Position numbers and translations under genes: made by a program
The notes under the pieces: model-generated
Seen by the model: the letters and a program-made list of their open reading frames with translations, nothing else
What the model was told of the DNA's origin: nothing
Databases searched by the model: none
Part shown: positions 16,858 through 63,872 of the stretch, in pieces
Layout of the letters: every line of letters begins with the position of its first letter
Numbering within the stretch: position 1 is the stretch's first letter
Assembly (NCBI GenBank): GCA_002269645.1
Contig: NIVC01000989.1
Coordinates: 124,001 to 188,000 of the forward strand
Reading direction: 5' to 3'
Length of the DNA: 64,000 bases
Source: Macrostomum lignano
Lineage: Eukaryota

Positions 16858-16968
16858 ACCACTCAATTTATTGCATGATACTCTAAACTTTTAACAGGCA
16901 TACTTCATCAAAAAAGAAAAAATTGCAAGAAAAGAAGAAAACAAACTATACTAAAAACTTGAAAGACA

Positions 16969-28298: not shown

Positions 28299-29819
28299 AT
28301 GTCGGAGCCGACCACTTCCTGCTTTATCAAAGGCTGCACCGATCCTGTGTCTGGCACCGGTGCTCGAATACGTCAGCCACTGTGTGAAAGACATCTCGAA
28401 CAGGACAGGCACAGGGTGCGTGAGTTGCACAAGAATTTACAGGCAAAGCTGAAACCATTGCTGAAATTGCAGAAAGAATTTCGGATGCAGCAGCAAGCTC
28501 TGTCAGTTGAGCTGCAAGAGACTGAGGAGCTGTTTGAGTCGGCTGTGGACTCGCTGATGAAGTGGAAGGCAGCTGTGACAAAGCGACTGACTGAGAGACA
28601 CGACAGCGTGTTGCAGAATCTGCAGCAGTTGTCCGCTCTGCAGGAGTATGAGCGAGAAGTGACGGAAGCAGAAGAGCACAATGACTTCAATAAAATGTTT
28701 GAGATCTCTGGCGTGCTAGATATTCAGAGTGAAGAGTTGCAGATGGCAGGTGGCACGACTATTAACAAGGACTCTGAGCGAGGCACTGGAAGGACTGTGG
28801 GCGATGTGAGCGGCTGTGTGAGGGACTTACAGCTGCTAATTGACAGACACCTGAGTGATGTGATGCAGCTGTGCGAGTCAGCAGACTCACTTTGTGCAGA
28901 TCAGCCAATCTGTGAGTTTCAGACTAAAATAAAAGATCTGCCGGGTTCTCCTTTCTATGTGACATCATGCAGCAACACGCAAGACTTTTACGTGGATTCG
29001 CAGTGCAAGGTGGTCAACGGTCCGACTGACAGAGGGCTTCCACTGCCGTGTCTCTTCATTATTTTTCATCCTAATGATAAGATAAACTACCTTCTTGCCT
29101 GCTCAGTCGACGGCTTAGTGAAAGCGCAGCTACAGCTCGACATTGATGTCTCAAAAACTGTTGTAGGACTCTGCTGTGACAGCAAGCGACAGAGTCTTTA
29201 TGTTGCTCAGTTTGACGCAGTGAAGGTGACGGACCTGAGCGGCTGCGTGACGCAGGTTTTCAACTCGAGCAGCATGGGACAGCCAGTCAACCTTATTGCT
29301 TTGGCCTGCAGCTCTGACAAGATATTTACTTTGAGGAAAGGCAACCCAGAATGGTCAGTGCTGTGCATCGATAAAGACAGCGGTCAGCTGCAGACCAACA
29401 TTACCTTAGTTGGCGTCGGTCCCTCTGGTAAAGTCACCGAAGGCATGTCTGTAGTCGACAACACGCTGCTGCTCACTGACTACGAAGGTGGCAAGCTCTA
29501 CAAAGTGTGCATCGCCAGCGGTCAGCTGATCTCGACTTACCCGACCAAGCGAAGCCGTCTTGACAAGCTATCTGGACCTGTTGGTGTCGCGGCTCATCGC
29601 TCAGGTTTGCTGTTTGTCAGCGAGTGTTCAGGGCGAGTGGTTCGTTTGATGCGGAGTGACGGCACTGTGCTGCAGACTGTCGAAGTGGAATGTCAGGCTG
29701 ATGGTGGCGCTAGGAAACTTGATTCCCCTTTTGGCTTGGCGATCATTGAAGGAAGCCCCGAGCTTTTGGCCGTCACCCAGAATAACATGTCTATTAGTAT
29801 TTATAGACGGAATTTATAA
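28299..29819 (+). CDS. TRIM-NHL-like protein copy 1 (Zn knuckle, coiled coil, NHL-like beta-propeller), 506 aa, intronless CDS
   Basis: ATG at 28299 after a splice acceptor; CFIKGC...LCERH, long helical region, NHL-like blades such as [19 protein letters not shown] and [10 protein letters not shown]. Confidence 0.85.
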
Positions 29820-32082
29820 TTCACATTCACAAAATCCTGCTAACTATTTGTCTATCTATTTGATACCCTTAATTTATTCTGGTTCGCAAGCATGTTACTT
29901 GGCTTAGCTATTGATGATTCTCTTTGTGTCAGTTTTTTTCTGCATTTGATTTTTCATTTTTGCTTAGTTTGTTTCCAATTTTATAATACTGCATTTTCAC
30001 GCAAGATACTATCGCTTTTGGTGATTAAAATACTCGTATGACATCAAGCAAATAACGAGAGACTCGCTATGCTTTATATGCAAATGTACCAGGATGAAGC
30101 AGAATCTCACCAGAATCGTTACATTGCTTTGCATTTGAAGTAAACTGTTCGATGTGTTTAAGGTCATTTGTAACTATTTTGAATGAGCAATCAAGCCTCT
30201 GGTCAGATTTATCACTTTTGACAAAGTAATGACGGACTGACCGTTATATTTTGGTTTGACTTGATCCATATAGTTATTTTAATCAATTGGCACAGCAGCG
30301 TTGCATGATAAGCAAATGAGGTCTCAGTTTGATTTGTGTAAAGTCTAATTTAGATCGCTAAAAAGGCGATTTTTTGGTAGGGTTTACACATTTGTGCTGA
30401 TTGCTTTTATTGTTGTAACATATTTATTGCATTTGTATGTCAGTGAATGGTTTTTGTACCTGACGAACATCTATTTTGTACTCGTAAGTTTGTATGTCGG
30501 AAATTTTTGTCGAAATAGGCATTTACGAGCGATATTATCATTTATTTCAACAAACTTTTCATACTAACGCGTGATAATAAGGTTTTTTTCTCGAGTAATT
30601 ACGAACTGCTCTCTACAGTTTATCCTGTTTTTATCTAGCCATTATCAACTCCTGAAATCTCCGATCCCACTGCAGCTACTATAACAACTTGATATGCCAT
30701 GTCACTCGCGGTTAAATTTGCTAAAAAGCAGAGCGTCTACTCTTTATTCAGTAGTTTGTGTGCGCAGAGGTACTTTAATTTGATGTGGCAGCCATAAAAT
30801 GTCATCCTCGGGTTCGCGGCCTCTCTCGCTCGCCTGCACACGCGCTGGATATGGATTTGGAAAATCAGAGGCAATAGTTGCAGCTTTAAGAACTTTAAAT
30901 ATTATGTAAAATTTAATACACTTTCATAGCGCTATCATAAAAGCAAAATAACACAAATTTACTGCAGAATAATATAAGTAAAGCGCTTTTTGTGACTGGC
31001 ATATCAAGTATCTTTGAAACCCACGGTATATTTTTGTATTCGCTTTGCATCCCGACTTATTAGCCATAATTTTCACTACTGACTAAATAAATATTGCATA
31101 TGTTGACCGTTAAAACCTAAAGCAATTTTCGTCTGGACTTATTTACCTTAGTTTAAAGACAGCTCTTAGTCTCCAAGCTTTTCAGTTGTAAAATTCAGTT
31201 GTTAAAGTCTCAACCGACCTCAAGCCATAGGAGTTTCTTATCCTCAGAAATGGTCTCATAACAGCGATCCTATTATACGGTATTCACTCATTCTTGGTGT
31301 AGACAGAGTAGAAAACTGAAGGGCTAGGCAAGTCTTGTATTGAACACCCGGTTGCATGGATACAAGTATTGATGCCATCAATACGAGCGTATTACAGTGC
31401 CATGCAAGTTAAGCTTTGCTAGTCTATTTGGCTCTTACATTTCTAAAATTAAATACATTTTTGCTTCATTATTATAAAGGCAAAATACGCAAATTTCACT
31501 ACTAAGAACTGTAGATAAGCTCTTTTTAAGTAGCATATCAAGTTTTTTGGGAATTGTGTACCTTACCGTATATTTTTGTATCCGTTTCGGGTATGACTCA
31601 ATAACTGGAATTTCTACTACTACCCTAATAAATTCTGCATATCAGCTACGTTCTCTCTTTAAATTTAGTAAAATTTTCGTCTGCAGTTATTTATAATTTT
31701 GTCCGACGAAAAAACTTAGTCGCCCAGTTTTCTGATTGTAAAATTCCCATTTTTAGGCCTTAAATTTTTAAGCAGGCCTCATTCCAAAGTCTTCTAATCA
31801 AAAAAGCTACTACGAGCGTTGCAACTTGTGAATTACACCCTCAATAGGTCACTCACACAATAAAGCATAAACTGAAATATGGCATTGTTTAGCTTGGTTA
31901 CAAAGTTGAGCCTCATTTCGATTATAACCTTTCTAACGTCTGAGCGCTTTATTAGAGTGATGAAGTCACGCTTTGCAGAGTTCAGATTTATCATCAGCTT
32001 TAGTCAGCTTTGCTTTGTGAAAAATGGCTTTCTAATTTCTGTATTAAATTCACTATAATATCATATTTTCAGTTACGACTCA

Positions 32083-33597
32083 ATGTCGAAGCCGACCACT
32101 TCCTGCTTTATCAAAGGCTGCACCGATCCTGTGTCTGGCACCGGTGCTCGAATCCGTCAGCCACTGTGTGAAAGACATCTCGAACAGGACAGGCACAGGG
32201 TGCGTGAGTTGCACAAGAATTTACAGACCAAACTGAAAACTTTGTCGGAATTGCAGAAAGAATTTCGGATACAACAGCAAGCTCTGTCAGTTGAGCTGCA
32301 AGAGACTGAGGAGCTGTTTGAGTCGGCTGTGGACTCGCTGATGAAGTGGAAGGCAGCTGTGACAAAGCGACTGACTGAGAGACACGACAGCGTGTTGCAG
32401 AATCTGCAGCAGTTGTCCGCTCTACAGGAGTATGAGCGAGAAGTGACGGAAGCAGAAAAGCACAATGACTTCAATAAGATGTTTGAAATTTCCAGCGCAT
32501 TCGATATTGAGAGTGAAGAGTTGCAGACGACGTTTGGCACGACTATTACCGAAGACTCTGAGCGAGGCACTGGAAGGACTGTGGGCGATGTGAGCGGCTG
32601 TGTGAGGGACTTGCAGCTGCTAATTGACAGACACCTGAGTGATGTGATGCAGTTGTGCGAGTCAGCAGAGCCTTTTAGTGCAGAAAAGCCTATCTGTGAG
32701 TTTCAGTCTGAAATTAAAGATCTGCCGGGTTCCCCTCTCCATGTGTCATCATGCAGCAACACGCAAGGCTTTTACGTGGATTCTCAGAGCAAGATGGTCA
32801 AGGAGGTCACTGACAGAGAGCTGCCACAGCCGTGTCTCTTTGTTAGTTTTCATCCTGAGAATAAGATAAACTACCTTCTTGCCTGCTCAGTCGACGGTTC
32901 AGTAAAAGCAGAGTTACAGCTCGACATTGATATCTCAAATACTGTCGTTGGTCTCTGCTCTGACAGCAAGCGACAGAGTCTTTATGTCGCCCAGTTTGAT
33001 GTAGTGAAAGTGACGGACCTGAGCGGCTGCGTGACGCAGGTTTTCAACTCGAGCAGCCTGGGACAGCCAGTTGACCTTATTGCTTTGGCCTGCAGCTCTG
33101 ACAAGATATTTGCTTTGAGCAAAGGCAACCCAGAATGGTCAGTGCTGTGCATCGATAAAGACAGCGGTCACCTGCAGACCAGCATAACTTTGGTTGGTGT
33201 CAGTCCCTCGGGTAAATTCATTGAGGGTATGTCTGTAGTCGACAACGCGCTGCTGCTAACCGACTGTGCCGCTGACAATCTCTACAGAATGTGCATCGCT
33301 AGCGGTCAGCTGATCTCGACCTACCCGACCAAGCGAAGTCGCCTTGATAAGTTTCGTGAAGTTGTTGCTGTCGCAGCTCATCGCTCGGGGCTGCTGTTTG
33401 TCAGCGAAGGGCATGTGGTTCGTGTGATGCGCAGTGACGGCATTGTGCTGCAGTCCGTGGAAATCGGGGGTCAGTCTGGCAGTGGCGGAAGAAAACATGA
33501 TTACCCTTTCGGCTTGGCGATCATCGAAGGAAGCTCCAAGCTGCTGGCGGTGTGTCAGGATGCAAAGGCAATTGGCATTTATAAGCTTACTGTGTAA
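32083..33597 (+). CDS. TRIM-NHL-like protein copy 2, 504 aa
   Basis: Full ORF paralogous to copy 1. Confidence 0.85.
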
Positions 33598-34398
33598 TTT
33601 TACCAGTGCGGCTGGAAGTTGCGGTGGCGATCATTGAATGAAGCCGTAATCTGCTGGCCGTCACCTAGGGTAACATTTCTGTTTGTGTATCCCGGCGCAT
33701 TATATACATGTAAGTCTTCTGTGAAATCATACAAACTTTATTTTTTTGCTCATAGCTAATCATGTCTCGCTCGCCTTAGCTGTTAAGGAGTCTGTTTTCC
33801 AGTTTTGGTTTCCATAATTGTTTTTTTTGCGTTTAGTTTGCTTGCAATTATATGATGCAGCATTTTTGCACAAGCTCTTATCGTTTTTGGCGATTCGAAC
33901 AAGACTTCAGACAAACAATGCGAGATTCCCTATGCTTTATATGCAAGTGTACCATGGTGAGGGTGAATCTAACCAGTGTATGCATATCTACTGCTGGACC
34001 TTGAAAAGTCTTCACTCTGATCTAGTGAGCCATTTTTCTCCGATCTCAACTACAAGTTACGCAACTGACATCCCGCGCGGTTAGCCGTATTATTCAATTG
34101 CACACTAAATGAAAGCCGCCTCAGAGCCCAGGCAATTCCGTTAGTCAATTGGCAAATCATTGATTGCATGACCAACAATTCGAGTCTCAGTTTGTGATTT
34201 TTCTAAAGTTTTTTTGTTCGAGTGTCAGTGTCAAAGTCTCCAAATTTTCTAAAATCGCTAATAAAGTGTTTTGTATCTGTTATGGTTTACTCAACAGTGC
34301 TGATTACTTTATGCTTGCAGCACATTTATTGCTTTTCTGTGTCAAATAGTGATTTTTATCGCCGACGAGTATCTACTTTGCGCTGTTGCACTCCTAAG

Positions 34399-35418: not shown

Positions 35419-36553
35419 TAAGTTTTGATGACTGAAATATTCCACGATATAAGTGTTTATATTAGGATTTAGAAAGCTTAATTCTAACCCACGTTAAAAA
35501 AGTTTGATTCCTATTAATGCATTTTTCGGTAATGAGGAATCGCTGCACTTCATCCTGTTCTATCCAGCTGTTTTCGACTCCTGAAATATCCGATCCCACC
35601 GCAGATGCCAGAACAACTGTTATGCCACTCAAAATTAAGTTTGTAAAATACTAGAGCGTCTACTGTATATTCAGTAGATTGTCTGCGCAGTGTCATTAAA
35701 ATTTAATAGCGGCAGCAGCTTTAAGTCCTCTCCTTTTTCTTGGATAACGGCCTCAGAAGCGTATGGGGGTTAAGAATGAGCAAAAAGCATTTAACTCGAT
35801 GTATACAAGTGAACGCAAGCTGGACGAAACTCAGCCTGGGGGGCAGGCCCAATCTAGCTCAGCCAATGAGAAGGCAGTAAGGAGGGAGGTCAGACACAAG
35901 TGGGCAGGATTAAACCCAAACTGTTTATTAGCCTGACTGTGGGCTGGGGCGCCACCCTTTTCTTTCTTGCTCGCTACTTATGAAAAAGCCAGCGACGTTT
36001 GTTGCAGCTTCAAAAACTATATATTTTCAAAAGTTGAATTGATTTTGACTGCACTATTATGAAGGCAAAATATGCAAATTTAATTGATAAAAAGAGTAGA
36101 TACGCTCTATTTGCGTGGCTTATCCAGTTATTTTCGTATCTCTGGATCCGACTGCATGTTTTGTATCAGTTTTGCATCTTCACACATCAACCAGAATTTT
36201 TTACTGCCTAAATACATGGTGCCTATTTGCGCTACTTTGGCTCTTCAAACTGGAAACAATTTTCGTCTGCAATTCTTTATTTTAGTGTAGAGAAAAAAAA
36301 TTGCAAGCTCTTCTGATTGTAAAATTCCGTGTTGAAGTGACCGTGTAGTTGTGACCTTATAGTTGTGACCTTAAAGTTGTGACCACCGTATGATTTTGAC
36401 CATATTTCGGTTGTGATTGAGCTATGTTTGGTTCTTGGAGGTTTTAATACGTAAATTAAATATTGGCCTAGAATATGCCAGTGTTATATAAAAAAAATCT
36501 TTTCATTCTCACAATGCAGTATATTAGCAAAAATCTATTCTAATTGCAGAAAA

Positions 36554-40156: not shown

Positions 40157-41149
<993 letters not shown>

Positions 41150-41296
41150 TAGCCGGGGAGTTTCTCGGTTGCTAGCGGTCGGGCCGGTACGGGCTTAAGC
41201 CACCCCCCGGTCGCTACCTCTTGGCCTGGTTGTTGGGTTTGGGGTTACGGCCCAGCGGCTTCTCACCTTTAGTCCCCACTCGCCTTTCAGCGACTC

Positions 41297-42762
41297 ATGG
41301 AGTATTCACTTACCTCCGACACGTCCGAGGCTGCTGGAGCACCAACCGAGGTTGGCACCGCGGCCCAGCCGGACATTCGCAACACCGGAACCCCCGGTGC
41401 CTCTCAATCTGCCGCTGCCGCCGCTCAGGATAATACCGGAGTGGCTGGACAAGACAGCGGACCTCAGATTTCAAAAAAGAAGGCCCGTAGCATTGCTCGC
41501 TACAAAGCCTTTCTCCAGCGCAAAGCGGAGGAACGGAGGAATGCGAAAGCCGCCCCTCCGGCCACCTCTGAGGAGGGTGCCGGTAACTCTGCGAACTCCG
41601 CGGAGGAGCCGACATCCGACAAGGGGGTGGACCCCGCGCGCCGGTCTGATGCGTCAGGTGCCGCCGAAGCTCCTGGTGCGGCTGGCCCCTCCCGTGACCG
41701 GACCTCTGCCCGTGTGGAAGCTCCCACGGCCGTGGAGGGATCCAAAGCGGGGGGCGCTGGCCAAACCACAAAGCCGAAGCGAACCTACGCGGCTATGGCC
41801 AAAAGGCAGCCGGCCCTGGTTATCCAAGGCCAGGAGACGCCTCTTACGGCCGAACAGCTCGACCTTATCTGGCGCAGGTTGGACTCCCACCTGGTCAAGA
41901 TGGCCTTGAGCGGCACTACCATTCGAGTCCAAAAGACGAAAGTCGAGGACCAAGCCCTCTATATCCAGCCCACCGACAGCCAGTCAGGACAGCAGCTCCT
42001 CGAGCTGCTGAAAACCTTCGACTGGGGTACGGAGCTGGAGAACCTGTTCATCTACAGGGAGGACGAGCGACCCCGGACACACCGGCACCGTGCCTGGATC
42101 CCGGCTCGCAGCTGCATCACCAAGGCCGACGAGCTGCGTCACCTGCTAGTGGCTTCCAACCCGGAGCTACCGGCCAACGGTGTCGTAGTTCACGAGACCA
42201 TCTCCAAGCCAGGCGGAGACGGTTTCACGGCCATTCTTTGACTGTCGGATAGCTGGATGCTCCGCTACCCGGACATGTCCATCATCTCTGTCGGGCTGTT
42301 GCAGATTCAGCTCTTTAGCTTTGAGTCTGACGCCACCCGCCCACCGCCCCCGGAGAAGCGTAAGCGGGCAGTCGGGGGCTCTGCCGGGCGGAAACGCCCA
42401 GGAAAAGAAGCTCCCGGCCGTCACGAACCCTCCGAGGACATGGACCCTGTCAGAGGGAAAGCCGCGAAAGCTGCAGCAACAGGCGGACGTGGGAAGGGCC
42501 GGAAACCCGCCCGGAACACTATCCGCTCTGGTCTGACTCAGCGCGCGAAACAGCTGCTGGACACCGCCAAGGCCCCCAACCGCAGCCACCCCCAGCCCAG
42601 TGTCACCACTGCGGCCCCCCCGGAAAACCGGGCCGAGAGCGAGAATGCCGCCCAGGTAGCGACCCCGCCCTCGACCATGGAATCCATCCGGGAGGAGCCC
42701 ATGGAGCTGGAGCCTGGAGCTATCGGCGAGGCAGAAGAGGCAGCTCTCCTGCACAACTCGCC

Positions 42763-42766
<4 letters not shown>
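41297..42766 (+). CDS. Retrotransposon ORF1 (~489 codons) with one in-frame TGA at 42239-42241
   Basis: ORFs 41297-42241 and 42257-42766 share one frame; the central region (RAWIP...LVASNPEL) resembles, from memory, the DUF4780-type ORF1 of LOA elements. Confidence 0.7.
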
Positions 42767-46510
<3,744 letters not shown>

Positions 46511-49500
46511 CTGCCCGTGGTCGCCAGGGGTTAGCGAAATGGGCGGCAACGCCTCCTCGCTGTTTCCGGACGCACGGAGCCCCCTGCAGCTAAGTCAAGA
46601 CGGACCTGAGCGGCTGCGTGACGCAGGTTTTGAACTCGAGCAGCCTGGGACAGCCAGTCCTTTTTATTGCTTTGGCCTGCAGCTCTGACAAGATATTTGC
46701 TTTGAGCAAAGGCAACCCAGAATGGTCAGTGCTGTGCATCGATAAAGACAGCGGTCAGCTGCAGACTAAAATTTCCTTGATTGGAGCCAGTCCCTCTGGT
46801 AAATATGTCGAGGGCATGTCTGTAATCGACAATACGCTGCTGCTTGCTGACTATGCCGGTGGCAAGCTCTACAAAGTGTGCATCGCCAGCGGTCAGCTGA
46901 TTACGACCTACTCGACCAAGCGAAGTCCTCTGGAGAAGTTTCGTGGAACTGTTGGTGTCGCGGTTCATCCGTCGGGTCTGCTGTTTGTCAGCGAGCGTTC
47001 AGGGCATGTGGTTCGTGTGATGCGCAGTGACGGCACTGTGCTGCAGACTGTGGAAGTCATGGGTCAGACTGGCAGTGGCGGAAGAAAATTTGATTACCCT
47101 TTTGGCTTGACGATTATTGAAGGAAGCCCGAAGTTGCTGGCGGTGTGTCAATATTCAAAAGCAATTGGCCTTTATATAAGCTTACTGTATAATTTTTTAT
47201 AATTTTGTGCAACTGTCTGGTATTTGCGGTGGCGAACTTGATGGCTCATTTGAATTGGCGATCATTGAATGAAGCCGTAAGTTGCTTGCCCTCACCCAGA
47301 GTAATTTTTTTGTATCCCAACTGATTATATAATTCTCTTTTGCGAAATCCTTCAAACTGTTTAACCTTTTTATTGCTCATAACTAATCATTGTTCACCCG
47401 TCATAGCTCAGAGCCCAGACTATAGTGTGCAATTGAATAATAATACTGGTCCCCGCGCGGAATGCCAGTTGCGTATCTTGCTGTTGCGATCGGAGAGAAA
47501 TGGCTCACTTACCCTCACCAGCTCAGGGTGGATAATTTTCAATGTCCCACAGTGTATGCACCTTATGTAATTATGCTTAAGAAAGCATGCAACTGACAGA
47601 AATATTTAAGGTCATTTGCCAGCAGTGTTAGTGAGCAAGCAACCCTCGAGAAAGATTTATCACTGCTAGTCATGAGCTGACCGTCTTATTTTAGTTTAAC
47701 TCGAATCCAGACAATTCTTTTAGTCACTTGGCAAAGCAGCGTTGCATGATGAGCAAATGAAGTCTCAGATTTAGGTCGCTAATAAAGTGTTTTGTATCTG
47801 TTATGGCTTACTCAACAGTGGTCATTAATTTCATGATTTTAGCACATTCATTGCTTTTCTGTGTCAAATAGTGATTTATAGCCTGACGAGTATCTATTTT
47901 GCTGTTGCTCTGGTAAGTTTCGATGGCCGAAATAGTTCACAAAATGAGTATTTATATACAGGCATTTAAAAAGCTTTATTCTAGCTTAGGGTTACCTTTT
48001 TGTCGGTAATCACAAATTGCTGTCTGCAGCTCATCTCTTTTTATTCAGCTATTTTCATTCAACTCCAGACATCTCGGATTCCACCACAGACACTAGAATC
48101 TGTTCTGGTACGCTACTTGAAATTAAGTTGTGATGAACTGGAGTGTCTACTCTTTATTTCAGTAGTTTGTCTGCGCAGTGTCACTGAAATTCATTGTAGC
48201 AGCTAAAATTTTCTTTCCTTTCTTTTTGTTGGTGGCGTCTGTAGCATATGGGGTTAAAAATGAACAATCGAATAAAAATTTAACTCGATGTGCACAAGTC
48301 AACACCAGACGGACGAAACTCAGCCTAGGGGGCAGGCCTAATCTAGCTCAGCCATATAGAGGGCAATCTGGAGAGACGTCACAGTCAGACAAGCGGGCAA
48401 GAGGAAAGCCAAACTGTTTATCGGCCTGGCTGTGGACTGGGGCGCCACCCCGTTTTCTCTCTTGATATGCACACGCGCTGGATTTGAGTCTTCTTTTAGA
48501 AAGCCAAAGACGACTGTTGCAGATTCAACAACTTTAATATTTTGTACAATTGAATGATTGTTTGCTCAACTTTTATAGGGGAGTACGCAATATTTACTAC
48601 TAAAAAGAGTAGATAAGCATTTTTGTATGTGGCATACCTAGTTATTTTTAGTATCTGAGGATCCCATCACATATTTTTGTATCCGTTTCGCGTCTTGACT
48701 CTCACCAGAATATTTACTACTGCCCAAATAAATGGTGCATTTCTGTGCTACGTTGACTCTTCAAAATTGAAGCAATGTTCGTCTGCAGTTATTTATTTTG
48801 CTGTTATACGATACTTAGTCTTCAAGCTCTTCCGAGGCACAAAAGGTGCACAGTGGGAACTTTAGGCGTAGAAGCAATGCAAGGGGCGTTCCAACTCGCG
48901 AAAGTTCTTTGCTACTTTTCCTCACTATTCTTTGAAAAGATTCAAAACTTTTCACCACTTTTCGGAACTTTTCCTCAGTATTTGAAAGTCATTGAAACTT
49001 ATCAGTATTATAGGGAATGTTTACTTTCGAGGTTTGCCAGAATCAGAAAGGGGATGGCAGCGATTAGTATTAGTATAGTAAATAAAGCTCTTTCTATGTT
49101 CAATCTGTGCCTGCAATATACGAGTATGTAACTCTCAGTTAATTTTTATTACTAATTCCCGTTGGAAAGTTATTCACCTGCATAGGCATAAAAAAGTGAG
49201 CGAGGACGGTGCACATAAGAGGCACTTTAGTGGTCTATTTCGTGCGTGTTTTGGAAATGCACCTGTATGCACCTATTACATGTATTACACCTATTACTGT
49301 ATACATGTACGCTTCACACACCTGTAATTCACCTTTTATGCGCTTTCTGCGCCCCTTCAGCACCCCCCGTGCACCTGCTGTGCCTCACTTGTGAGCCTAC
49401 TGTTCACCCTTTGCGCAGCTGCAGTGCCCCTTTACTGCCCCTACAGCCGCAACTAGTAAGAATTGACAATTTCCCTAATGCCTGACAAACTTCACCGATT

Positions 49501-49847
49501 GTACACTTTTCATGCCTCTTTTCAAAACTTTTCCAACGGGTACGATTTTGACCGCATTGCAGTTGTGATTGCCTTATGATTGGTTTTCGAAAGTTTTAAT
49601 ACACTGTAAATAGATCTAAAATATATTTATAGGAAAGGTCTATATCTGTTTTCAGAACCCGAATGATGTTAGTAGGATTTTTGAGTTGACATCTAGCAAA
49701 ATTGATATGCTCTAAGGCCAGTTTTATGCATTTAAATCACAGTGCAATGTAGCATCCTTCGATTAATTATCTGTAATAAACATTGCGTTTGGTTATTTTC
49801 ATTTATTACAATGCAGTTTGGCCAAAACCTATTCTAATTGCAGACAA

Positions 49848-51368
49848 ATGTCGGAGCCGGGCACTTCCTGTTTCATCAGATGCTGCACCGATCCTGTGTC
49901 TGGCACCGGTGCTCGAATCCGTCAGCCACTGTGTGTAAGACATCTTGAACAGGACAGGCACAGGGTGCGTGAGCTGCACAGGAATTTACAGACCAAACTG
50001 AAGCCATTGCTGAAATTGCAGAAATGATTCAGGATGCAGCAGCAAGCTCTGTCAGTTGAGCTGCAAGAGACTGAGGAGCTGTTTGAGTCGGCTGTGGACT
50101 CGCTGATGAAGTGGAAGGCAGCTGTGACAAAGCGACTGACTGAGAGACACGACAGCGTGTTGCAGAATCTGCAGCAGTTGTCCGCTCTGCAGGAGTATGA
50201 GCGAGAAGTGACGGAAGCAGAAAAGCACAATGACTTCAATAAGATGTTTGAGATCTCTGGCGCCTTGGATATTAAGAGCGAAGAATTACAGATTACGAGT
50301 TACGCTGCTATTAACGAAGACTCTGAGCGAGGCATTGGAAGGACTGTGAGCGATGTGAGCGGCTGTGTGAGGGACTTGCAGCTGCTGATTGACAGACACC
50401 TGAGTGATGTGATGCAGCTGTGCGAGTCAGCAGAATCACTTTGTGCAGATCAGCCAATCTGTGAGTTTCAGTCTGAAATAAAAGATCTGCCGGGTTCTCC
50501 ATATTATGTGTCATCATGCAGCAACACGCAAGGCTTTTACGTGGATTCTCGCAGGAAGGTGGTCAAGGAGGTCACTGACAGAGAGCTGCCCCAGCCGTGT
50601 CTCTTTGTTAGTTTTCATCCTAATAATAAGATAAACTACCTTCTTGCTTGCTCAGTTGACGGCTTAGTGATAGCGGAGCTGCAGCTCGACATTGATGTCT
50701 CAAAATCAGTCGCTGGCCTCTGCTGTGACAGCAAGCGACAGAGTCTTTATGTCGCCCAGTTTGATGCAGTAAAGGTGACGGACCTGAGCGGCTGCGTGAC
50801 GCAGGTTTTCAACTCGAGCAGCCTGGGACAGCCAGTCGACTTTATTGCTTTGGCCTGCAGCTCTGACAAGATATTTGCTTTGAGCGATGTCAACCCAGAA
50901 TGGTCAGTGCTGTGCATCGATAAAGACAGCGGTCAGCTGCAGGCCAACATTACCTTAGTTGGTGTCAGTCTCTCTGGTAAATTCACTGAGGGCATGTCTG
51001 TAATCGACAACTCGCTGCTGCTCACTGACTATGAAGGTGGGAAGCTCTACAAAGTGTGCATCGCCAGCGGTCAGCTGATCTCGACCTACCCGACCAAGCG
51101 AAGCCGTTTTAAAAAGTTTTCTGGACCGGTTGGTGTCGCGGCTCATCGCTCAGATCTGCTGTGTGTCAGCGAGTATGCAGAGCATGCGGTTACTTTGATG
51201 CGGAGTGACGGCACTGTGCTGCAGACTATCGAACTCGAGGGTCAAGCTGGCAGTGACGGTGACGAACTTGATGACCCATTTGGCTTGGCGATCGTTGAAG
51301 GAAGCCCGAAGCTGCTGGCGGTGTGTCAAGATTCAAAATCGATTGGCCTTTATAAGCTTACTGTGTAA
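49848..51368 (+). pseudogene. TRIM-NHL-like copy 5 with an in-frame nonsense codon (GAA>TGA at 50025-50027)
   Basis: ATG at 49848 is in frame with the 444 aa ORF starting at 50034; the other copies read E at this codon. Confidence 0.8.
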
Positions 51369-53600: not shown

Positions 53601-54186
53601 GTTTGCATTATCAGGAAAAGTCAGTTGAATCCGCCGCCTCAGTTATTTGGCTCTCACAATGAAACTTGAAGTAGACATAGAGCCATAGGGATGAGAGACC
53701 AGACGAGCAACACCATATTTAAAATATTTCCCCCCATCATCAGAAATGGGCTCATTAGGAGCAATCTAATCTATTTATTCATCATTGATGCAGACAGCGT
53801 ACAAAACTGAAGAGCTAGGCAAAGCTTTGTCCTAAACACACCAGTGCTATAGATACAATTATCGATGCCATTAATACCATAGTCCCGTGCAAATTTAAAT
53901 TGCCTATTCATCTGGCTCTGACCGCAAAATTGAAGTTTCCGTTTGTAAGCAAGTTATATGGTTTCAAAAGTAACTTTAAAGTTGTGAATTATGTCATTTG
54001 GTCCCTCTCGCATCATATCAAATTTAGCGGAATGGGCGTCCGCGCCTTCCCGCTGTGTCCCCTCCGGGACAGCCCTGCAGCATCATATCAACTTAAATAT
54101 GGCATTTTTGGCTTTGTTAAAAGTTTTCAGTATTTTCACAGGATAAGTATTTTTCATTATTTTAAAGTATTTTCAGTTCCAACTCA

Positions 54187-55707
54187 ATGTCGGAGCCGAC
54201 CACTTCCTGCTTTATCAAAGGCTGCACCGATCCTGTGTCTGGCAGCGGTGCTCGAATACGTCAGCCACTGTGTGAAAGACATCTCGAACAGGACAGGCAC
54301 AGGGTGCGTGAGTTGCACAAGAATTTACATACAAAGATGAAGCCCTTGCTGAAATTGCAGAAAGAATTTCGGATGCAGCAGCAAGCTCTGTCAGTTGAGC
54401 TGCAAGAGACTGAGGAGCTGTTTGAGTCGGCTGTGGACTCGCTGATGAAGTGGAAGGCAGCTGTGACAAAGCGACTGACTGAGAGACACGACAGCGTGTT
54501 GCAGAATCTGCAGCAGTTGTCCGCTCTGCAGGAGTATGAGCGAGAAGTGACGGAAGCAGAAAAGGACAATGACTTCAATAAGATGTTTGAAATTTCTAAC
54601 GCGTTAGATATAAAGAGTGAAGAGTTGCAGACGACGTGTGGCCCGGCGTCTAACGAAGACTCTGAACGAGGCACTGTAAGGACTGTTGGTGATGTGAGCG
54701 GCTGTGTGAGGGACTTGCAGCTGCTGATTGACAGACACCTGAGTGATGTGATGCAGCTGTGCGAGTCAGCAGACCCACTCAGTGAAGATCAGCCAATCTG
54801 TGGGTTTCAGTCTGAAATAAAAGATCTGCCGGGTTCTCCTTTCTATGTAACATCATGCAGCAACACGCAAGACTTTTACGTGGACTCTCAGAGCAAGGTG
54901 GTCAACGATCCGACTGACAGAGAGCTGCCACAGCCGTGTCTCTTCGTTAGTTTTCATCCTAATGATAAGATAAACCACCTTCTTGCCTGCTCAGTCGACG
55001 GCTTAGTGAAAGCGCAGCTACAGCTCGACATTGATGTCTCAAAAACTGTTGTAGGGCTCTGCTGTGACAGCAAGCGACAGAGTCTTTTTGTTGCTCAGTT
55101 TGACGCAGTGAAGGTGACGGACCTGAGCGGCTTCGTGGCGCAGGTTTTCAACTCGAGCAGCCTGGGACAGCCAGTCAACTTTTTTGCCTTGACCTGCAGC
55201 TCTGACAAGATATTTGCTTTGAGCAAAGGCAACCCAGAATGGTCAGTGCTGTGCATCGATAAAGACAGCGGTCAGCTGCAGACTAAAATTTCCTTGATTG
55301 GAGCCAGTCCCTCTGGTAAATATGTCGAGGGCATGTCTGTAATCGACAATACGCTGCTGCTTGCTGACTATGCCGGTGGCAAGCTCTACAAAGTGTGCAT
55401 CGCCAGCGGTCAGCTGATTACGACCTACTCGACCAAGCGAAGTCCTCTGGAGAAGTTTCGTGGAACTGTTGGTGTCGCGGTTCATCCGTCGGGTCTGCTG
55501 TTTGTCAGCGAGCGTTCAGGGCATGTGGTTCGTTTGATGCAAAGTGACGGCACTGTGCTGCAGACTGTCGCAGTGGAGGGTCAGGCTGGCATTTGCGGAA
55601 GAAAACTTGACAACCCATTGGGCTTGACGATCATCGAAGGAAGCCCCAAGCTGCTGGTGGTGTGTCAAAATTTAAAATCAATTAGTCTTTATACTTTTAC
55701 TGTGTGA
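54187..55707 (+). CDS. TRIM-NHL-like protein copy 6, 506 aa
   Basis: Full ORF paralogous to copy 1. Confidence 0.85.
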
Positions 55708-56533: not shown

Positions 56534-57225
56534 GACATTGATAACTCCAAAACTGTTGTAGGACTTTGCTGTGAGAGCAAGCGACAGAGTCTTTATGTTG
56601 CTCAGTTTGATACAGTGAAAGTGACGGATCTGAGCAGCTGCGTGATTCAGGTTTTTGACTCAAAGAATCTCGAACAGCCAGTCGACTTCAGTGGCTTGGC
56701 CTGCAGCTCTGACAAGATATTTTCTTGAGTTTAGGCAGCCCAGAATGGTCAGTGCTGTGCATCGATAAAGACAGCGGTCAGCTGCAGACCAAAATTACCT
56801 TAGTTGATGTCTGTCCGTCCGGTAAATTAATCGAGGGCATGTCTGTAATTGACAACGCGTTGCTGTTTTCAGACTATGCTAATGGCAAGCTCTACAAAGT
56901 GTGCATCGCCAGCAGTTAGCTGATATTGACCTACCCGACCAAGCGAGGTCGGATAGGTCGTGTTGCTGTCGCGGCTCATCGCTCGGGTCTGCTGTTTGTC
57001 AGTGAGTGTTTAGGGCATGTAGTTCGTGTGATGCGGAGTGACGGCACTGTGCTGCAGACTGTCGAAGTCGACTGTCAGGCTGGCAGGGACGGTGACACAC
57101 TTGACGATCCGTTTGGCCTGACGATTATTGAAGGAAACCCCAAGCTGCTGGCTGTCACTCAGAGTAACATGTCTTTCTGCATTTATAGACTAAATATGTG
57201 TGACTCTCTTGCGAAATCCTACTAA
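56534..57225 (+). pseudogene. TRIM-NHL-like copy 7, 5'-truncated fragment (blades 2-6)
   Basis: Homology starts at [12 protein letters not shown]; 1 bp deletion near 56725; CAG>TAG stop at 56917-56919. Confidence 0.85.
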
Positions 57226-57427
57226 CTATTTAGTCTTTTTGTGTTCGTAACTAGTCTTGTTTCGCTCGCCTGTTTGGCTTTGCTGTTATTGATTCTGTTT
57301 CATCATTTTTTAAGTTTTTTATAGTTGGTTCTTACGAGTAAACTTTTCGTTTAGTTCGTTTCCAATATGATGCAGCATTTTTGCACCAGCTATTATCGCT
57401 TTTGGAGTTTCGAATGTGACTTCAGAC

Positions 57428-58084: not shown

Positions 58085-59711
58085 CTTCAGACTAATAACG
58101 GGTGACTCGCTGTGTCTCATATGCAACTGTACCATGGTGAGGGTGAGTGTCACCAGTGTGTACATGCATATATGTGCTTTATATAATACTCGTTGCTCGT
58201 AAAGTTAAGGAAATCAACTGAAGAAAATATTTAATGTCATTTGCAACCATTTTTAGTGAGCAAACAATTCTTTGCACAGATTTATCACTGCTAATAATGA
58301 GCTAACCGTACTATTTTAGTTTGACTTGATCGAGACAGTTCTTGTCAATTGGCAAACCAGCATTGCATGATGAGCATAGAGAGTCTTAGATTGATTTTCC
58401 CGAAGTTTAATTTAGATTAGATATTCAATGAAGTGTTTTTGACAGTGTTTGTTTTTGTTTTGTTTTTGAAGTGTTATTCACTTGTAAAAACTTTATCCTA
58501 CTAGCCCACGGTAATAAAATTTCTTTTTGCTGATGCATATTTTCGATAGTCACAAATTGCTGTCTGGCGTTCATCCTCTTATTATCCAGCTTTTTTAGGT
58601 TCCCGAAGTCTCTTATCCCTAGTAAGATACTAGAATAAGTCAACATGCCACTCGCAATTAAACTTGTGAAATAGTAGAGCGTCTACTCTTCATTCAGTAG
58701 TTTTTCTGCGCAGTGTCACTTAAATTTATTGTGGCAGCTAAAATTTTCTCCTTTCCCTGGGTTGGTGGTTTTCGTAAGCATATGGTTAAGAATGAACAAC
58801 AGGCATTTAACTCGATGTACGCAAGTGAACGCAAGAAAAAAAATCAGTCTATGGGGTAAGCCTAATCTGGCCCAGCCAATGAGAGGGCAGTAAGAAGAGT
58901 GTCAAAGTCAGACAAAAGCGGGCAAGAGGAAAGCCAAACTGTTATCGGCCTGGCTGTGGGCTTGAACGCCACCTCTTTCTCTCTTGCTCGCTATGCACGC
59001 ATTGGATTCGGGTTTGATTTTAAAAAGACGATAGCAATTGTTGCAGATTCGAAAGCTTTAAATATTTTGTAAAATTGAATGAATATATACATTACTACGA
59101 GCGTATCATAATGGCAAAATACGCAAAAGTACTACTAAAAAGAAGTTCGAATAAAAAGGTGTTTTTTTCGGATGACACATTTAGTTTTTTGTGTCTGTGA
59201 ATCCTATCGCTTATTTTTGCATCCGTTTCGCAGCTTGACTTATTAACCAGACTTTCTACTACTGCCAAAATAAGTTATGCATATCTAAACTATGTTACCT
59301 TCAAAAAAAGAAATTTTTCTCTGTCATTTGATTTAGTGTCAAGACAAAACTTAGTTCCTAAGAGTAGAAAACTGTAGATCTCTGTTTAAAGCACCCAGTG
59401 CCATGGATACAGGATTAATGTCAATAATACCAAAGTACCATGCAAGTTTAAATCTCTAGTGATACTTGGTTTTGAATCCAGAATTAAAATTCTGGCTATC
59501 AAAGTTGGATGCTTTAAATATAAGTTTATAAAACTTGTTATTTACCCTCTCATTAAGTCACTCTCGCATTGCCTTTTTATGGTGATTAACTTAGAGTTGG
59601 CAGATTTCAGAAGTAATTATTCAGACAAGTTAGTTTTGCGTCAAGAAATGGTTTTCTGATTTCTGTATTAAACTTTACTACGAGTATAATCTTATTTTCA
59701 GTTGCAACTCA

Positions 59712-61232
59712 ATGTCCGAACCGAGCACTTCTTGTTTTATCAAAGGCTGCAACGATCCCGCATGTGGCACTGGTATACGAATCCTACAGCCATTGTGTGA
59801 GAAACACATTGAGCAGGACAGAGAAATTGTGCGAGATCTGTACGAAAATATGCAGAAAAAGCTGAAGCCATTGCTGAAATTGCAGAAAGAATTTCGGATA
59901 CAACAGCAAGCTCTGTCAGCTGAGCTGCAAGAGACTGAGGAGCTGTTTGAGTCGGCTGTGGACTCGCTGATGAAGTGGAAGGCAGCTGTGACAAAGCGAC
60001 TGACTGAGAGACACGACAGCGTGTTGCAGAATCTGCAGCAGTTGTCCGCTCTGCAGGAGTATGAGCGAGAAGTGACGGAAGCAGAAGAGCACAATGACTT
60101 CAATAAAATGTTTGAGATTTCCAGCGCGTTAGATATTGAGAGTAACGAGTTACAGATGGTATTTGGCACGTCTATTACCGAAGAATCTGAGCGAGGCACT
60201 GGAAGGACTGTGGGCGATGTGAGCGGCTGTGTGAGGGACTTGCAGCTGCTGATTGACAGACACCTGAGTGATGTGATGCAGCTGTGCGAGTCAGCAGAGT
60301 CTCTTAGTGCAGATCAGCCAATCTGTGAGTTTCAGTCAATGATAAAAGATCTACCGGGCTCTCCTTATTTTGTCTCATCATGCAGCAACACGCAAGGCTT
60401 TTACGTGGACTCTCAGAGCAAGGTGGTCAAGGAGCCCACTGACAGAGAGCTGCCACAGCCGTGTCTCTTCGTTAGTTTTCATCCTAAAAATAAGATAAAC
60501 TACCTTTTTGCTTGCTCAGTAGACGGCTTAGTGAAAGCGCAGCTACAGCTCGACATTGATGTCTCAAAAACTGTTGTAGGGCTCTGCTGTGACAGCAAGC
60601 GACAGAGTCTTTTTGTTGCTCAGTTTGACGCAGTGAAGGTGACGGACCTGAGCGGCTTCGTGGCGCAGGTTTTCAACTCGAGCAGCCTGGGACAGCCAGT
60701 CAACTTTTTTGCCTTGACCTGCAGCTCTGACAAGATATTTGCTTTGAGCAAAGGCAACCCAGAATGGTCAGTGCTGTGCATCGATAAAGACAGCGGTCAG
60801 CTGCAGACTAAAATTTCCTTGATTGGAGCCAGTCCCTCTGGTAAATATGTCGAGGGCATGTCTGTAATCGACAATACGCTGCTGCTTGCTGACTATGCCG
60901 GTGGCAAGCTCTACAAAGTGTGCATCGCCAGCGGTCAGCTGATTACGACCTACCCGACCAAGCGAAGTCCTCTGGAGAAGTTTCGTGGAACTGTTGGTGT
61001 CGCGGCTCATCGGTCAGGTCTGCTGTTTGTCAGCGAGTATTCAGGGCAAGTGCTTCGTTTGATGCGGAGTGACGGCACTGTGCTGCGGACTGTCGAAGTC
61101 GAGGGTCAGACTGGCAGTGGCGGGAGAAAACTTGATAGCCCGCTTGGCTTGGCGATCATTGAGCGAAGCCCAAAGGTGCTGGCGGTGTGTCAAGATTCAA
61201 AATCGATTGGCCTTTATAAGCTGATTGTGTAA
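59712..61232 (+). CDS. TRIM-NHL-like protein copy 8, 506 aa, divergent N-terminus
   Basis: Full ORF; keeps the C-x4-C-x15-C-x2-H spacing with a different sequence ([24 protein letters not shown]). Confidence 0.85.
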
Positions 61233-61420
61233 CTTTTTAGTTCATTCCGATCTGTTTACCATTTTCTAGCTTTTTTAATACTCAAATGTTAGTTATTTGC
61301 TTTAATTTACATTTATATTATGTATTAACTATATATATTTTTATATAACATAATAATAATATGAGTAGTCACTACGGTTGTTTTAAGTTCATTTTTAAGG
61401 CAAAATTTTTCATTAATCGA

Positions 61421-61551
61421 TTTTTGAGAGGCAAGGGGGCTGTGTGCACCCTGGAGCACTTTGTGTGGCATTGTCACACAACCGGCGAGAGGCATTACTG
61501 CCCTTTCCGCCGACTCCCCTTAGCAGGCACACACAGCGGCCCTAACTTTAT
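61421..61551 (-). mobile_element. 5'-truncated copy of the SINE at 62041-62402
   Basis: Aligns by eye with the 3' part of that SINE (62051-62220). Confidence 0.7.
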
Positions 61552-61616
61552 TTGTCGCTAAGCATGCAGTCTCTAAATTTTGAGTTAGTGTAACAAAAAT
61601 CTATCATAATGATCTA

Positions 61617-62551
61617 TACTCAGCAACAGTCAAAAGTTCCACCATCCAAGCGAGATGAATTTTTCTCACTTTGCGAGTGACACAGCTTACGGCACGCGCG
61701 AAGCTTATTGCTACTTGGGGGACTGTTCAGGATCACAACGCACTGCCTGCGCTGGCCTTCCCGGTCCCCCAGACATGAATCCCATCGAGCATGTCTGGGA
61801 TTTCCTAAAACGCAGCATTTGAAAAGAGAATCCACCACAGAATTTTGCGGAGCTGCGTCATGCCATTGAAAAGGCTTGGCAGCAGCTTCACCAAGACCTT
61901 CTGCACCGCCTCATCCTTCGGATGCCCCGCAGAGTCGCCGCACTTCTGCGTGCGAGGAGATCTCACGCGTTATTAAGCTTTGCGATCCCAACTGCATATT
62001 GCGTGAAAAAAGAAATTGTTATGATTTTGTGCGAATGAAGTTTTTTTTATTAGAGGCAGGGGGGTTGTGTGCACCCTGGCGCACTTTAAGCGACATAGGC
62101 ACACAACCGGCGAGAGGCATTGCTGCCCATTCCGCCGACTCCCCTGAGCAGGCATACAAGCGCGCGGATACGTACGCAGGCACACACTCACACAGGAGTG
62201 TACAGCGGCCCTAACTTTATCAATTGTTAGGCATGTACACTTCACTGCGACTTGGGGGGTTGGCTCTCAAAGCCGTTAATTGCACGAGCAGAGCCAAGCC
62301 GAAATTCCAATTCAGCCCCAAATTAATGTGACTGCACTTGGAATCGAGCCTGGGTCGCTGGCACACCAGAGCAGCTGCGCTACCGCTGGGCTACGGCCCC
62401 CCTGCGAATGACGTTTATATTTTTTTTAATTCCCTTCCTCGCGGCGGCTTAGTTGCGTAATTTGAGGGTTGAATTGTGAGTGAGAAGTTGTCGCAATAAG
62501 AAAGAAAATTTTTATCTCGCTTGGCGGGTGCAACTTTTGACTTGCTGAGTG
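61617..62551 (+). mobile_element. Internally deleted Tc1/mariner DNA transposon
   Basis: ~60 bp imperfect TIRs (tactcagcaacagtcaaaagtt... / ...aacttttgacttgctgagtg) flanked by TA; decayed transposase C-terminus WPSRSPDMNPIEHVWDFLKR...MPRRVAALLRAR at about 61750-61975 with a frameshift and a stop; empty sites visible after copies 5 and 6. Confidence 0.88.
62041..62402 (-). mobile_element. tRNA-derived SINE nested in the Tc1 element
   Basis: Minus strand begins GGGGCCGTAGCCCAGCGGTAG (A box 62383-62393), B-box-like GGCTCGATTCC (62340-62350), ends in TAATAAAAAAAA; ~11 bp TSD tgcgaatga(a/c)g at 62030-62040 and 62403-62413. Confidence 0.82.
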
Positions 62552-63179
62552 TATTTAGCATGTCTGATACTCATCAAGAGAATTTACTCAAAATTTGGAA
62601 ATTTAACTAATACATGAATACCAGCAATGTAATTAACAATTTTTATCAACTGCCAAGTTTTATGTTTTTTATTTTTATGTAGTGTTTCATTCTTTTGCTA
62701 TTTTTGTACTTTTTGTTCGTTTCTGCGCTAAAATCTGATTTCTCTAAACTGAAACCATTATTTTTTTATTTCAATTTTTTTACAAGAAATATTTGAACAA
62801 TTGACTACTTTGTTAATAAAGTTATTTAGTAATATCTCAAGGATTTTCAGATTATGTGTTCAAAATCCAATAAGGTAGGCGCAAAGGTCACTAAGATTAG
62901 CGGGAATTTTTCCAATTGTAAATGAAGCAGTTGCCTCCCTCCTGGCGACCAAACTTAAGCTTGATAGAGCAGTCCTATGTCCACTTACCAACTGAACCAC
63001 TGCTTGTGAATTGAGACTTCGAGACTTTGTCTTAACTGTCCTTTTAAACTGAAGGAAAGTACCAATAATGAGATTTTATAGTCTCAGATGTCAACTGACA
63101 GTTGACAAATTTTGGTCAAAATGTTTGCTGTGTGTGCCGCATGGCACATGCGAACAGTGAGCGTCTGCTAAAGTGGGTA

Positions 63180-63645
63180 TCTAGCTTCCCAAATCCCCCA
63201 AGGTTCCCAAATCCCCAACCTTCCCGAATCCCCAACCTTCCCAAATCCCCCAAGCTTCCCAAATCCCCCCAAGCTTCCCAAATCGCCCCAAGCTTCCCAA
63301 ATCCCCCCAAGCTTCCCAAATCCCAAACCTTCCCAAATCCCCCCAAGCTTCCCAAATCGCCCAAACCTTCCCAAATCCCCCCAAGCTTCCCAAATCCCAA
63401 ACCTTCCCAAATGCCCCAAGCTTCCCAAATCCCCAACCTTCTCAAATCCCCCAAGCTTTCCAAATCCCCCAAGCTTCCCAAATCCCCCAAGCTTCCCAAA
63501 TCCCCAACCTTCTCAAATCCCCCAAGCTTTCCAAATCCCCCAAGCTTTCCAAATCCCCCAAGCTTTCCAAATCCCCCAAGCTTCCCAAAACCCACAAGCT
63601 TCTTGAATACCCAAGCTTCCCGAATCCCAAATTCCTCCGGTTTCT
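63180..63645. repeat. 18-19 bp minisatellite (ccaagcttcccaaatcccc)
   Basis: Directly visible tandem units. Confidence 0.9.
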
Positions 63646-63648
63646 CAA

Positions 63649-63872
63649 ATCGGTCGGGTCTGCTGTTTGTCAGCGAGCGTTCAGGGCAAGTGGTTTGTTT
63701 GATGCGGAGTGACGGCACTGTGCTGCAGACTGTCGCAGTCGAGGGTCAGACTGGCAGTGGCGGGAGAAAACTTGATAGCCCGCTTGGCTTGGCGATCATT
63801 GAGCGAAGCCCGAAGGTGCTGGCGGTGTGTCAAGATTCAAAATCGATTGGCCTTTATAAGCTTAATGTGTGA
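63649..63872 (+). pseudogene. TRIM-NHL-like copy 9, 3' fragment (last 1.5 blades)
   Basis: [15 protein letters not shown]...[33 protein letters not shown], nearly identical to the end of copy 8. Confidence 0.8.

Follow-up and report, generated by a model that had tools for sequence, protein, structure and literature searches.

A tandem array of finger-stalk-NHL genes in the flatworm Macrostomum lignano, probably of TRIM-NHL descent

Introduction

What do nine closely similar genes, lying head-to-tail in the genome of the flatworm Macrostomum lignano, encode, and how has their array evolved? We address this question for a 64,000-nucleotide (nt) stretch of assembly GCA_002269645.1 (contig NIVC01000989.1, positions 124,001 to 188,000, forward strand; hereafter 'the window', in whose coordinates all positions are given). 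An initial annotation had described the genes as intronless and as encoding cytosolic proteins with a Zn knuckle, a coiled coil and an NHL propeller, and had proposed that they form a lineage-specific, rapidly evolving cluster of sensors or restriction factors. The reading that we favor, with a probability of about 0.6, is that the locus holds an entire tandem array of genes for a Macrostomum-lineage family of finger-stalk-NHL proteins, that the family probably derives from TRIM-NHL proteins, and that its products are likely dimeric binding modules with a shared stalk and differing propellers.

Results

Nine paralogues form a complete array

A six-frame list of open reading frames (ORFs) and a tblastn search with copy 3 against the window identify nine paralogue units on the + strand at positions 28299-63872. 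The copies span ~36 kb, are arranged head-to-tail, and are intact in five cases of nine (lengths in amino acids, aa; TSD, target-site duplication):

28299..29819, + strand: copy 1 (c1); intact, 506 aa; finger, helical stalk, NHL propeller
32083..33597, + strand: copy 2 (c2); intact, 504 aa
36554..38071, + strand: copy 3 (c3); intact, 505 aa; the copy used for structure prediction
40193..41134, + strand: copy 4 (c4), 5' part; aa 1-314; ends at the first TSD copy
41135..46598, + strand: retrotransposon in c4; non-LTR (lacking long terminal repeats), 5464 bp
46599..47202, + strand: c4, 3' part; begins at the second TSD copy
49848..51368, + strand: copy 5 (c5); full length; in-frame TGA at codon 60 (50025-50027)
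54187..55707, + strand: copy 6 (c6); intact, 506 aa
56525..57192, + strand: copy 7 (c7); 5'-truncated, aa 278-503 only; frameshift at 56725, stop at 56917
59712..61232, + strand: copy 8 (c8); intact, 506 aa; identical to database protein P0004; divergent finger region
63609..63872, + strand: copy 9 (c9); last 90 codons only; directly after an 18-bp minisatellite (63183-63628)

The tblastn results agree exactly with the initial annotation in copy number, in the assignment of copies 1, 2, 3, 6 and 8 as intact and of copies 4, 5, 7 and 9 as disrupted or partial, and in both end coordinates. The birth-and-death decay that it had noted is real, c4 and c5 being disrupted and c7 and c9 being fragments. 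Each coding sequence is a single uninterrupted ORF, collinear with its paralogues; judged from the DNA, the coding sequences are thus intronless, as had been claimed, though the transcripts may have introns in the 5' untranslated region (UTR) or be trans-spliced. No further copy is present in window positions 1-28000 or in the 7 kb past the window end, and we conclude that the array is complete.

The lesion in c4 is an insertion flanked by a 13-bp TSD, GACGGACCTGAGC (41122-41134 and 46599-46611). In silico removal of the insert and of one TSD copy joins the two halves of c4 in frame; the gene has, in addition, a 2-bp insertion four codons ahead of the normal stop, which shifts the last 4 codons. 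The insert contains the following ORFs:

41297-42241: ORF1
42763-45360: endonuclease-reverse transcriptase (RT)
45647-46510: RNase H, in a different frame

Pfam matches are RVT_1 (1.7e-31), Exo_endo_phos_2 (2.2e-19) and RNase_H (6.9e-11), and the endonuclease is of the APE type. Since it encodes ORF1, an APE-type endonuclease with RT, and RNase H, the insert is a non-LTR retrotransposon. It arrived recently, given how little else has decayed in the host gene.

Between copies, divergence is 8-14% in coding DNA (86-93% pairwise identity) and 27-34% in the spacers (66-73% identity). We conclude that these are genuine paralogues rather than duplicates created by the assembly.

The database proteins closest to the products of the window, identical or near-identical to them, are M. 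lignano 'hypothetical proteins'. Two GenBank gene models are chimeric: P0001 (28299-33597) fuses ~175 N-terminal residues of copy 1 to copy 2 from ~residue 117, doubling 53 residues, and in P0002 (40193-51368) the 5' half of copy 4 is followed by the 3' half of copy 5, with the retrotransposon left out. These chimeras could be mapping artefacts, products of read-through splicing, or transcripts of recombinant alleles. A 256-aa ORF at 63102-63872 is an artefact in which the 18-bp minisatellite (a P/S/K-rich repeat in translation) runs into the last 90 codons of c9. Spacer ORFs of at least 80 aa look like noise and were rejected as genes.

The proteins carry an NHL propeller behind a helical stalk

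The array proteins are ~505 aa in length, and their C-terminal ~300 residues form a six-bladed NHL propeller. Pfam searches with whole array copies gave nothing significant, and the NHL assignment surfaced only through paralogues and profiles: the Pfam NHL repeat exceeds its threshold in two paralogues (P0011, 26.6 bits; P0023, 25.7 bits), and a family profile built from 14 members and searched against the Protein Data Bank (PDB) matches the NHL domains of Thin (6.6e-20), TRIM71 (3e-18), TRIM2 (3e-14), TRIM3 (9e-13) and Brat (6e-9), with NHLRC2 far weaker (7e-5). An AlphaFold2 (AF2) model of c3 has a mean predicted local distance difference test score (pLDDT) of 76.5 and of ~90 in the propeller, where 25 strands over residues 205-503 give six blades. 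The parts of the model are:

aa 8-32: finger
aa 30-126, 130-150 and 168-192: helices
aa 205-503: six-bladed propeller

Foldseek comparison of this model with the PDB retrieves the NHL domains of TRIM71, Thin and TRIM2/3, with target-normalized template-modeling (TM) scores of 0.70-0.75 and a root-mean-square deviation of ~4 Å. Of the three helices predicted ahead of the propeller, the first (~95 residues, 30-126) has pLDDT >90 over most of its length in a separate AF2 model of residues 1-206; residues 143-177 are predicted to be disordered. There is no filamin domain, as judged by the lack of any Pfam match and by the ~12 residues that separate the last helix (ending at 192) from the first propeller strand (205). 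Hydropathy analysis gives no hydrophobic N-terminus and no segment resembling a transmembrane helix (maximum Kyte-Doolittle 19-residue mean 1.25). Profile search, AF2 and Foldseek thus bear out the coiled coil and NHL propeller of the initial annotation, and hydropathy its statement that signal peptide and transmembrane segment are absent.

The net charge of the whole propeller ranges from -11 to +5, and its isoelectric point (pI) from 4.8 to 8.6, differing among copies (whole-domain values, not surface electrostatics). From its predicted charge, then, the propeller bears little resemblance to an RNA-binding domain that is basic throughout.

A single C2-CH finger precedes the stalk

Residues 8-32 of the array proteins form a finger of pattern C-x4-C-x15-C-x2-H. 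Across 21 diverse paralogues (down to ~20% identity) the pattern is C-x2/4-C-x15-16-C-x2-H, with the three Cys in all and the His in 20 of 21, and these four are the only Cys/His ligands ahead of the helix. This spacing rules out a retroviral-type CCHC zinc knuckle (C-x2-C-x4-H-x4-C), so that the 'Zn knuckle' first proposed has to be replaced by a single finger. The absence of a RING, which had also been proposed, holds: four ligands are present, where a RING (C3HC4) has eight, and Pfam gave no RING family at E values up to 1, nor up to 10 on the finger segment.

Searches for a B-box were likewise negative. The finger segment has no zf-B_box match in Pfam (E up to 10); a 21-finger profile searched against the PDB gave no B-box among its matches; the finger in the N-terminal AF2 model (residues 1-206) has pLDDT 41-57, and Foldseek found nothing for that model at E <1; and hhalign comparison of the finger with the PDB-verified B-box2-coiled coil of TRIM5alpha (PDB 5w9a/4tn3) gave a probability of <1%. 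Two hints point the other way. The finger lies directly ahead of the long helix, which is the position of B-box2 in TRIMs, and automatically assigned UniProt names of distant paralogues include 'Tripartite motif-containing protein 2', 'B box-type', 'RING-type' and 'NHL repeat-containing'. By their sequence features the proteins are TRIM-NHL-like and are not TRIMs by definition. They probably descend from a TRIM-NHL-type ancestor, with loss of the RING and of any recognizable B-box; given NHL similarity and domain order, TRIM-NHL ancestry is the most economical inference.

The family is restricted to the Macrostomum lineage

Searching 1.84 billion representative proteins exhaustively with HMMER yielded 18,213 matches, and membership was judged in the best 150, by a profile match extending well past the NHL repeats (near end to end in most cases, fragmentary in a few) or by being an M. 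lignano fragment. Among these best 150 of 18,213, at least 25 clusters (50% identity) belong to the family; M. lignano accounts for 22, and short metagenome contigs of the Joint Genome Institute (JGI) for three. Full-length relatives among the matches listed come only from M. lignano and from a few metagenome contigs, in line with the proposed lineage specificity, and no conserved single-copy orthologue across animals appears outside the lineage among the same matches. The metagenome relatives (L001, JGI sample 3300040775, and L006, JGI sample 3300040801; proteins P0028, P0010 and P0011) are 32-34% identical to the array proteins. Two of them, P0028 and P0010, together show finger, stalk and propeller in the same order at ~34% identity; therefore at least one further organism has the family. 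Other paralogues form same-strand, single-exon tandem triplets on two further contigs.

Giant top-scoring matches were rejected as members: they are metagenome-derived, those with names are archaeal or bacterial NHL/6-bladed-propeller proteins, and their similarity is limited to blades 4-6. When a 21-sequence profile was run in a further, word-indexed protein search, the new matches were prokaryotic NHL proteins, with no additional relative from a eukaryote; a scan of metagenome DNA gave 81 pattern matches, of which 0 were confirmed. The initial annotation had not recognized the genes as a described family. This stands insofar as a literature search found no publication on the family, and fails insofar as public automatic annotation already labels distant paralogues TRIM2-like or NHL; the TRIM-NHL likeness is therefore not newly recognized.

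The copies are mosaics with a near-invariant tract in the stalk

A nearest-neighbor sliding scan shows that the copies are mosaic. Over gene nt 1-525, c3 shares 96-100% identity with c4. No difference separates c6 from c8 over ~gene nt 826-1200, or c4 from c6 over gene nt 1126-1275, and the 3' ends of c8 and c9 agree at 98%. The longest shared runs of polymorphic sites (109 for c6/c8 and 89 for c4/c6) were reached in 0 of 2000 permutations. The mosaics and the permutation result together establish that gene conversion or unequal exchange is frequent.

The seven full-length copies share one tract with a single variable site:

28508..28673 (copy 1 coordinates), + strand: near-invariant coiled-coil tract; gene nt 210-375, aa ~70-125

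Gene nt 210-341 (132 nt) and 343-375 (33 nt) are identical in 7 of 7 full-length copies, synonymous sites included. Invariant columns make up 72% overall, the second-longest invariant run is 41 nt, and the flanks of the tract differ by ~10%. The tract codes for the middle of the long helix. RNA structure was rejected as its cause (z = -0.59; no Rfam family in the window). The invariance may reflect a hotspot of gene conversion, selection that maintains a shared dimer interface, or targeting by small RNAs.

Upstream of each ATG, conservation spans only ~25 nt (28273-28298, 32057-32082, 36528-36553, 40167-40192, 49822-49847, 54161-54186 and 59686-59711). These blocks are of two types: type one, ...TTGCAGACAAATG (in c3, ...TTGCAGAAAAATG), precedes c1, c3 and c5, and type two, ...TTTTCAGTTnCnACTCAATG, precedes c2, c4, c6 and c8. 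Both contain an acceptor-like pyrimidine-AG, for which a trans-splice site and a 5' UTR intron are candidates. The alternation of the two types suggests that the array may have grown by duplication of a two-gene unit.

Variation is concentrated in loops assigned to one propeller face

Pairwise ratios of nonsynonymous to synonymous substitution rates (dN/dS, omega) for the full-length copies are 0.30-0.50, which indicates selection that is purifying but relaxed. For comparison, mammalian dN/dS is 0.13 for conserved TRIMs and 0.29 for the fast-evolving group 2 TRIMs (PMC2533329).

We assigned blade strands A-D from AF2 secondary structure and NHL repeat register. By the convention for propellers, the D-to-A and B-to-C loops form the top face, and the two loop labels below follow from this convention:

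Top loops: mean entropy 0.67; dN/dS 0.63
Bottom loops: mean entropy 0.27; dN/dS 0.26
Strands: mean entropy 0.38; dN/dS 0.36

Top loops vary more than bottom loops (Mann-Whitney p = 7e-6, with faces labeled by convention, not from coordinates). Variation is concentrated in the loops assigned to the top face, and these loops would form that face if the convention holds here. No window has dN/dS convincingly >1, and the few 20-codon windows that approach 1 do so because their dS is very small; recombination among copies invalidates simple site tests. With dN/dS of 0.30-0.50 and no such window, overall positive selection is unsupported, and the description of the genes as rapidly evolving sensors or restriction factors is not borne out, nothing tying them to infection.

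A second version of the array differs in copy content and is transcribed

A second version of the array is present at NIVC01003604.1:58060-79595 (L002). It is collinear with window positions 30286-57097, with 92-99% identity in blocks, and it has a hybrid c3/c5-like copy, no c4/retrotransposon interval, and extra, more divergent copies. From this differing make-up we conclude that copy content varies between haplotypes or homeologues of the hidden polyploid M. lignano.

The window's own gene identifiers do not occur in the available portions of papers and supplements. Three genes of the second version, Mlig000357.g3, g4 and g5, do appear in the accessible part of the tables of Brand et al., 2020 (PMC7336406). 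Positional reads for fragments A/B/C/D, which may cross-map between paralogues, are 28/22/11/14 (g3), 6/7/12/17 (g4) and 66/62/52/40 (g5) (PMC7336406). In the same tables all three are 'Non-Specific', that is, not testis-, ovary- or tail-specific, and have base means of ~2-31 that do not change significantly with social group size (PMC7336406). An absence of expression would have counted against the initial proposal; in the tabulated data the second-version copies have detectable transcripts at a low level (PMC7336406). We conclude that the family is transcribed at a low level, as measured, in those tables, for second-version copies.

Repeat-rich DNA lies upstream of the array

Window positions 1-27500 contain more than 20 different mini- and microsatellite arrays with periods of 4-136 bp. 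Examples are a 23-bp repeat in 59 copies (1706-3077), a 31-bp repeat at 8173-8536 and 13961-15362, and (CAGT)n arrays at 16565-16858 and 27193-27466. Long ORFs in this region are mostly repeat translations. Outside the repeats lies an ATG-initiated ORF of 401 aa with Cys-rich stretches (16969-18174, + strand), which gave no match in Pfam (E up to 10) or PDB searches. Its N-terminus (…FPSKIGGKPAWL…) and a MYND-like Cys cluster are reminiscent of PDCD2-type proteins, a lead that Pfam and PDB did not confirm.

Discussion

We propose that a single-exon unit of ~4 kb probably spread as an array, the evolution of which combines unequal crossing-over, gene conversion, transposon insertion and point decay. 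Each intact gene would supply an intracellular protein of ~505 aa with one C2-CH zinc finger, one long and two shorter helices, and an NHL propeller. The TRIM-like stalk may dimerise, a protein or RNA target would dock on the propeller's top face, and the conserved stalk and finger would supply dimerisation or recruitment of a common partner. Because they have no RING, the proteins would not be ubiquitin ligases on their own and presumably act by binding or recruitment. Gene conversion shuffles propeller segments and homogenizes the stalk, and the outcome is paralogues with an identical stalk core and unlike propeller surfaces. We argue that the intact copies are functional because they are under purifying selection (omega 0.30-0.50) and because second-version copies yield transcripts.

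Several observations weigh against this proposal. Four of the nine copies are dead, and expression is low. No test gave a B-box or RING signal from the finger, and the case for TRIM descent consists solely of NHL similarity and domain order. The labels of top and bottom loops come from AF2 secondary structure and convention, not from coordinates; D-to-A loops are long and prone to vary in any propeller; and, with omega <1, relaxed constraint could account for the pattern.

Among the alternatives, the idea that the copies are assembly or haplotype artefacts draws on the tendency of M. lignano assemblies to keep duplicated haplotypes or homeologues, and on the existence of a second array version, 92-99% identical, on NIVC01003604.1. 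For the copies within the window it is refuted: they differ by 8-14% in coding DNA and by ~30% in spacers, their lesions differ from copy to copy, and one carries a unique transposon insertion with its TSD. We consider it very improbable that the array is largely functionless, a set of selfishly amplified or drifting duplicates in which gene conversion merely slows pseudogenisation. Such an array would be expected to resemble this one in having four of nine copies broken, low expression in the available tables, omega above that of typical conserved genes, and a position adjoining 28 kb of minisatellite-rich DNA; however, five ORFs of ~505 codons are still open at dS 0.2-0.3, omega is clearly <1, with strands and bottom loops included (0.26-0.36), and finger ligands and blade motifs are kept across paralogues down to 23% identity.

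Two further alternatives concern what the proteins do. That the array is a cluster of innate-immune sensors or restriction factors, with propellers recognizing pathogen or transposon molecules in an arms race like that of TRIM5-type clusters, is a speculative reading that we regard as doubtful. A species-restricted expansion with several tandem arrays, a copy number that differs between the two array versions, shuffled propeller segments, and variation focused on one putative propeller face all fit it, as does an omega of 0.3-0.5, at or above the 0.29 of the fast-evolving group 2 TRIMs (PMC2533329). It is opposed by the lack of any window with omega convincingly >1, by second-version expression that, in the accessible tables, is low, shows no positional specificity and does not react to social treatment, and by the lack of an effector domain (no RING); we know of no M. 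lignano pathogen that could be tied to the family. Less probable still is the view that these are Brat/LIN-41-like RNA-binding translational repressors of stem-cell or germline regulation, duplicated for dosage or subfunction. Its attraction is that the closest solved NHL domains belong to RNA-binding or developmental TRIM-NHLs (TRIM71/LIN-41, Brat), and that Brat likewise has no RING. Yet the propeller charge of -11 to +5 (pI 4.8-8.6) is unlike the basic surfaces of RNA-binding NHL domains, the tabulated second-version copies are 'Non-Specific' and not specific to testis, ovary or tail, and the family lacks any orthologue beyond its lineage, whereas developmental regulators are as a rule conserved, single-copy genes.

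Comparison with known proteins places the family near, and apart from, each of them. TRIM32/Drosophila Thin (Abba) gives the best propeller profile match (6.6e-20) and the top structural match (TM score 0.70-0.73), and likewise passes from coiled coil straight into NHL with no filamin/Ig domain between; however, Thin/TRIM32 is a conserved single-copy E3 ligase with RING and B-box, whereas the family described here has a single C2-CH finger without RING or detectable B-box, is multi-copy and tandem, and lacks orthologues beyond the lineage. The six-bladed NHL propeller after a coiled coil is shared with TRIM71/LIN-41 and TRIM2/TRIM3 (3e-18 to 9e-13; TM score 0.68-0.75), but these are conserved genes with developmental or neuronal roles, their products also contain RING, B-box and filamin domains, and the propeller here is not markedly basic. 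Drosophila Brat resembles the family in having a coiled coil and NHL (match 6e-9) with neither RING nor filamin domain, and in that it would work by binding rather than by ubiquitin ligation. Brat is a single-copy RNA-binding repressor with two B-boxes and a basic top surface; the family here has a 25-residue finger in place of the B-boxes and ~22 divergent clusters. The vertebrate group 2 TRIM clusters (TRIM5/6/22/34 type) offer the parallel of species-specific tandem clusters with birth-and-death evolution and a variable C-terminal recognition surface (PMC2533329). They differ in recognizing through SPRY rather than NHL, in possessing RING and B-box2, and in their documented positive selection, which is not found here; moreover, group 2 TRIMs are absent from invertebrates (PMC2533329).

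The most intriguing features of the array, on the reading that we favor, are the invariant stalk tract and the face-biased variation. An extension of that reading, which we offer as a long shot, would join the two in an intracellular repertoire for combinatorial recognition that only macrostomid flatworms have, formed by this array and its sister arrays: the coiled-coil core, held identical through gene conversion, would let any two paralogues heterodimerise, the shuffled top-face loops would carry specificity, and a small number of genes would yield many two-headed NHL receptors, directed against viruses, transposon products or other non-self. If true, these flatworms would have a counterpart of vertebrate TRIM5-type restriction that is built on NHL propellers and lacks a RING. 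For experiment, the 166-nt tract is a single RNA interference (RNAi) target for the whole array. Were the copies drifting duplicates, they would still present a clean case of concerted and birth-and-death evolution acting on separate parts of one gene.

TRIM-NHL proteins are normally few, conserved, RING-bearing regulators, and the lineage-specific TRIM expansion of vertebrates consists of SPRY-type genes (PMC2533329). A flatworm family that has kept nothing but the stalk and NHL propeller, multiplies in tandem, shuffles the propeller and leaves the stalk identical would show that the NHL propeller, too, can be a diversifying recognition module, and it is a candidate for a part in the poorly known innate defences, or in other lineage-specific biology, of a regenerating model flatworm.

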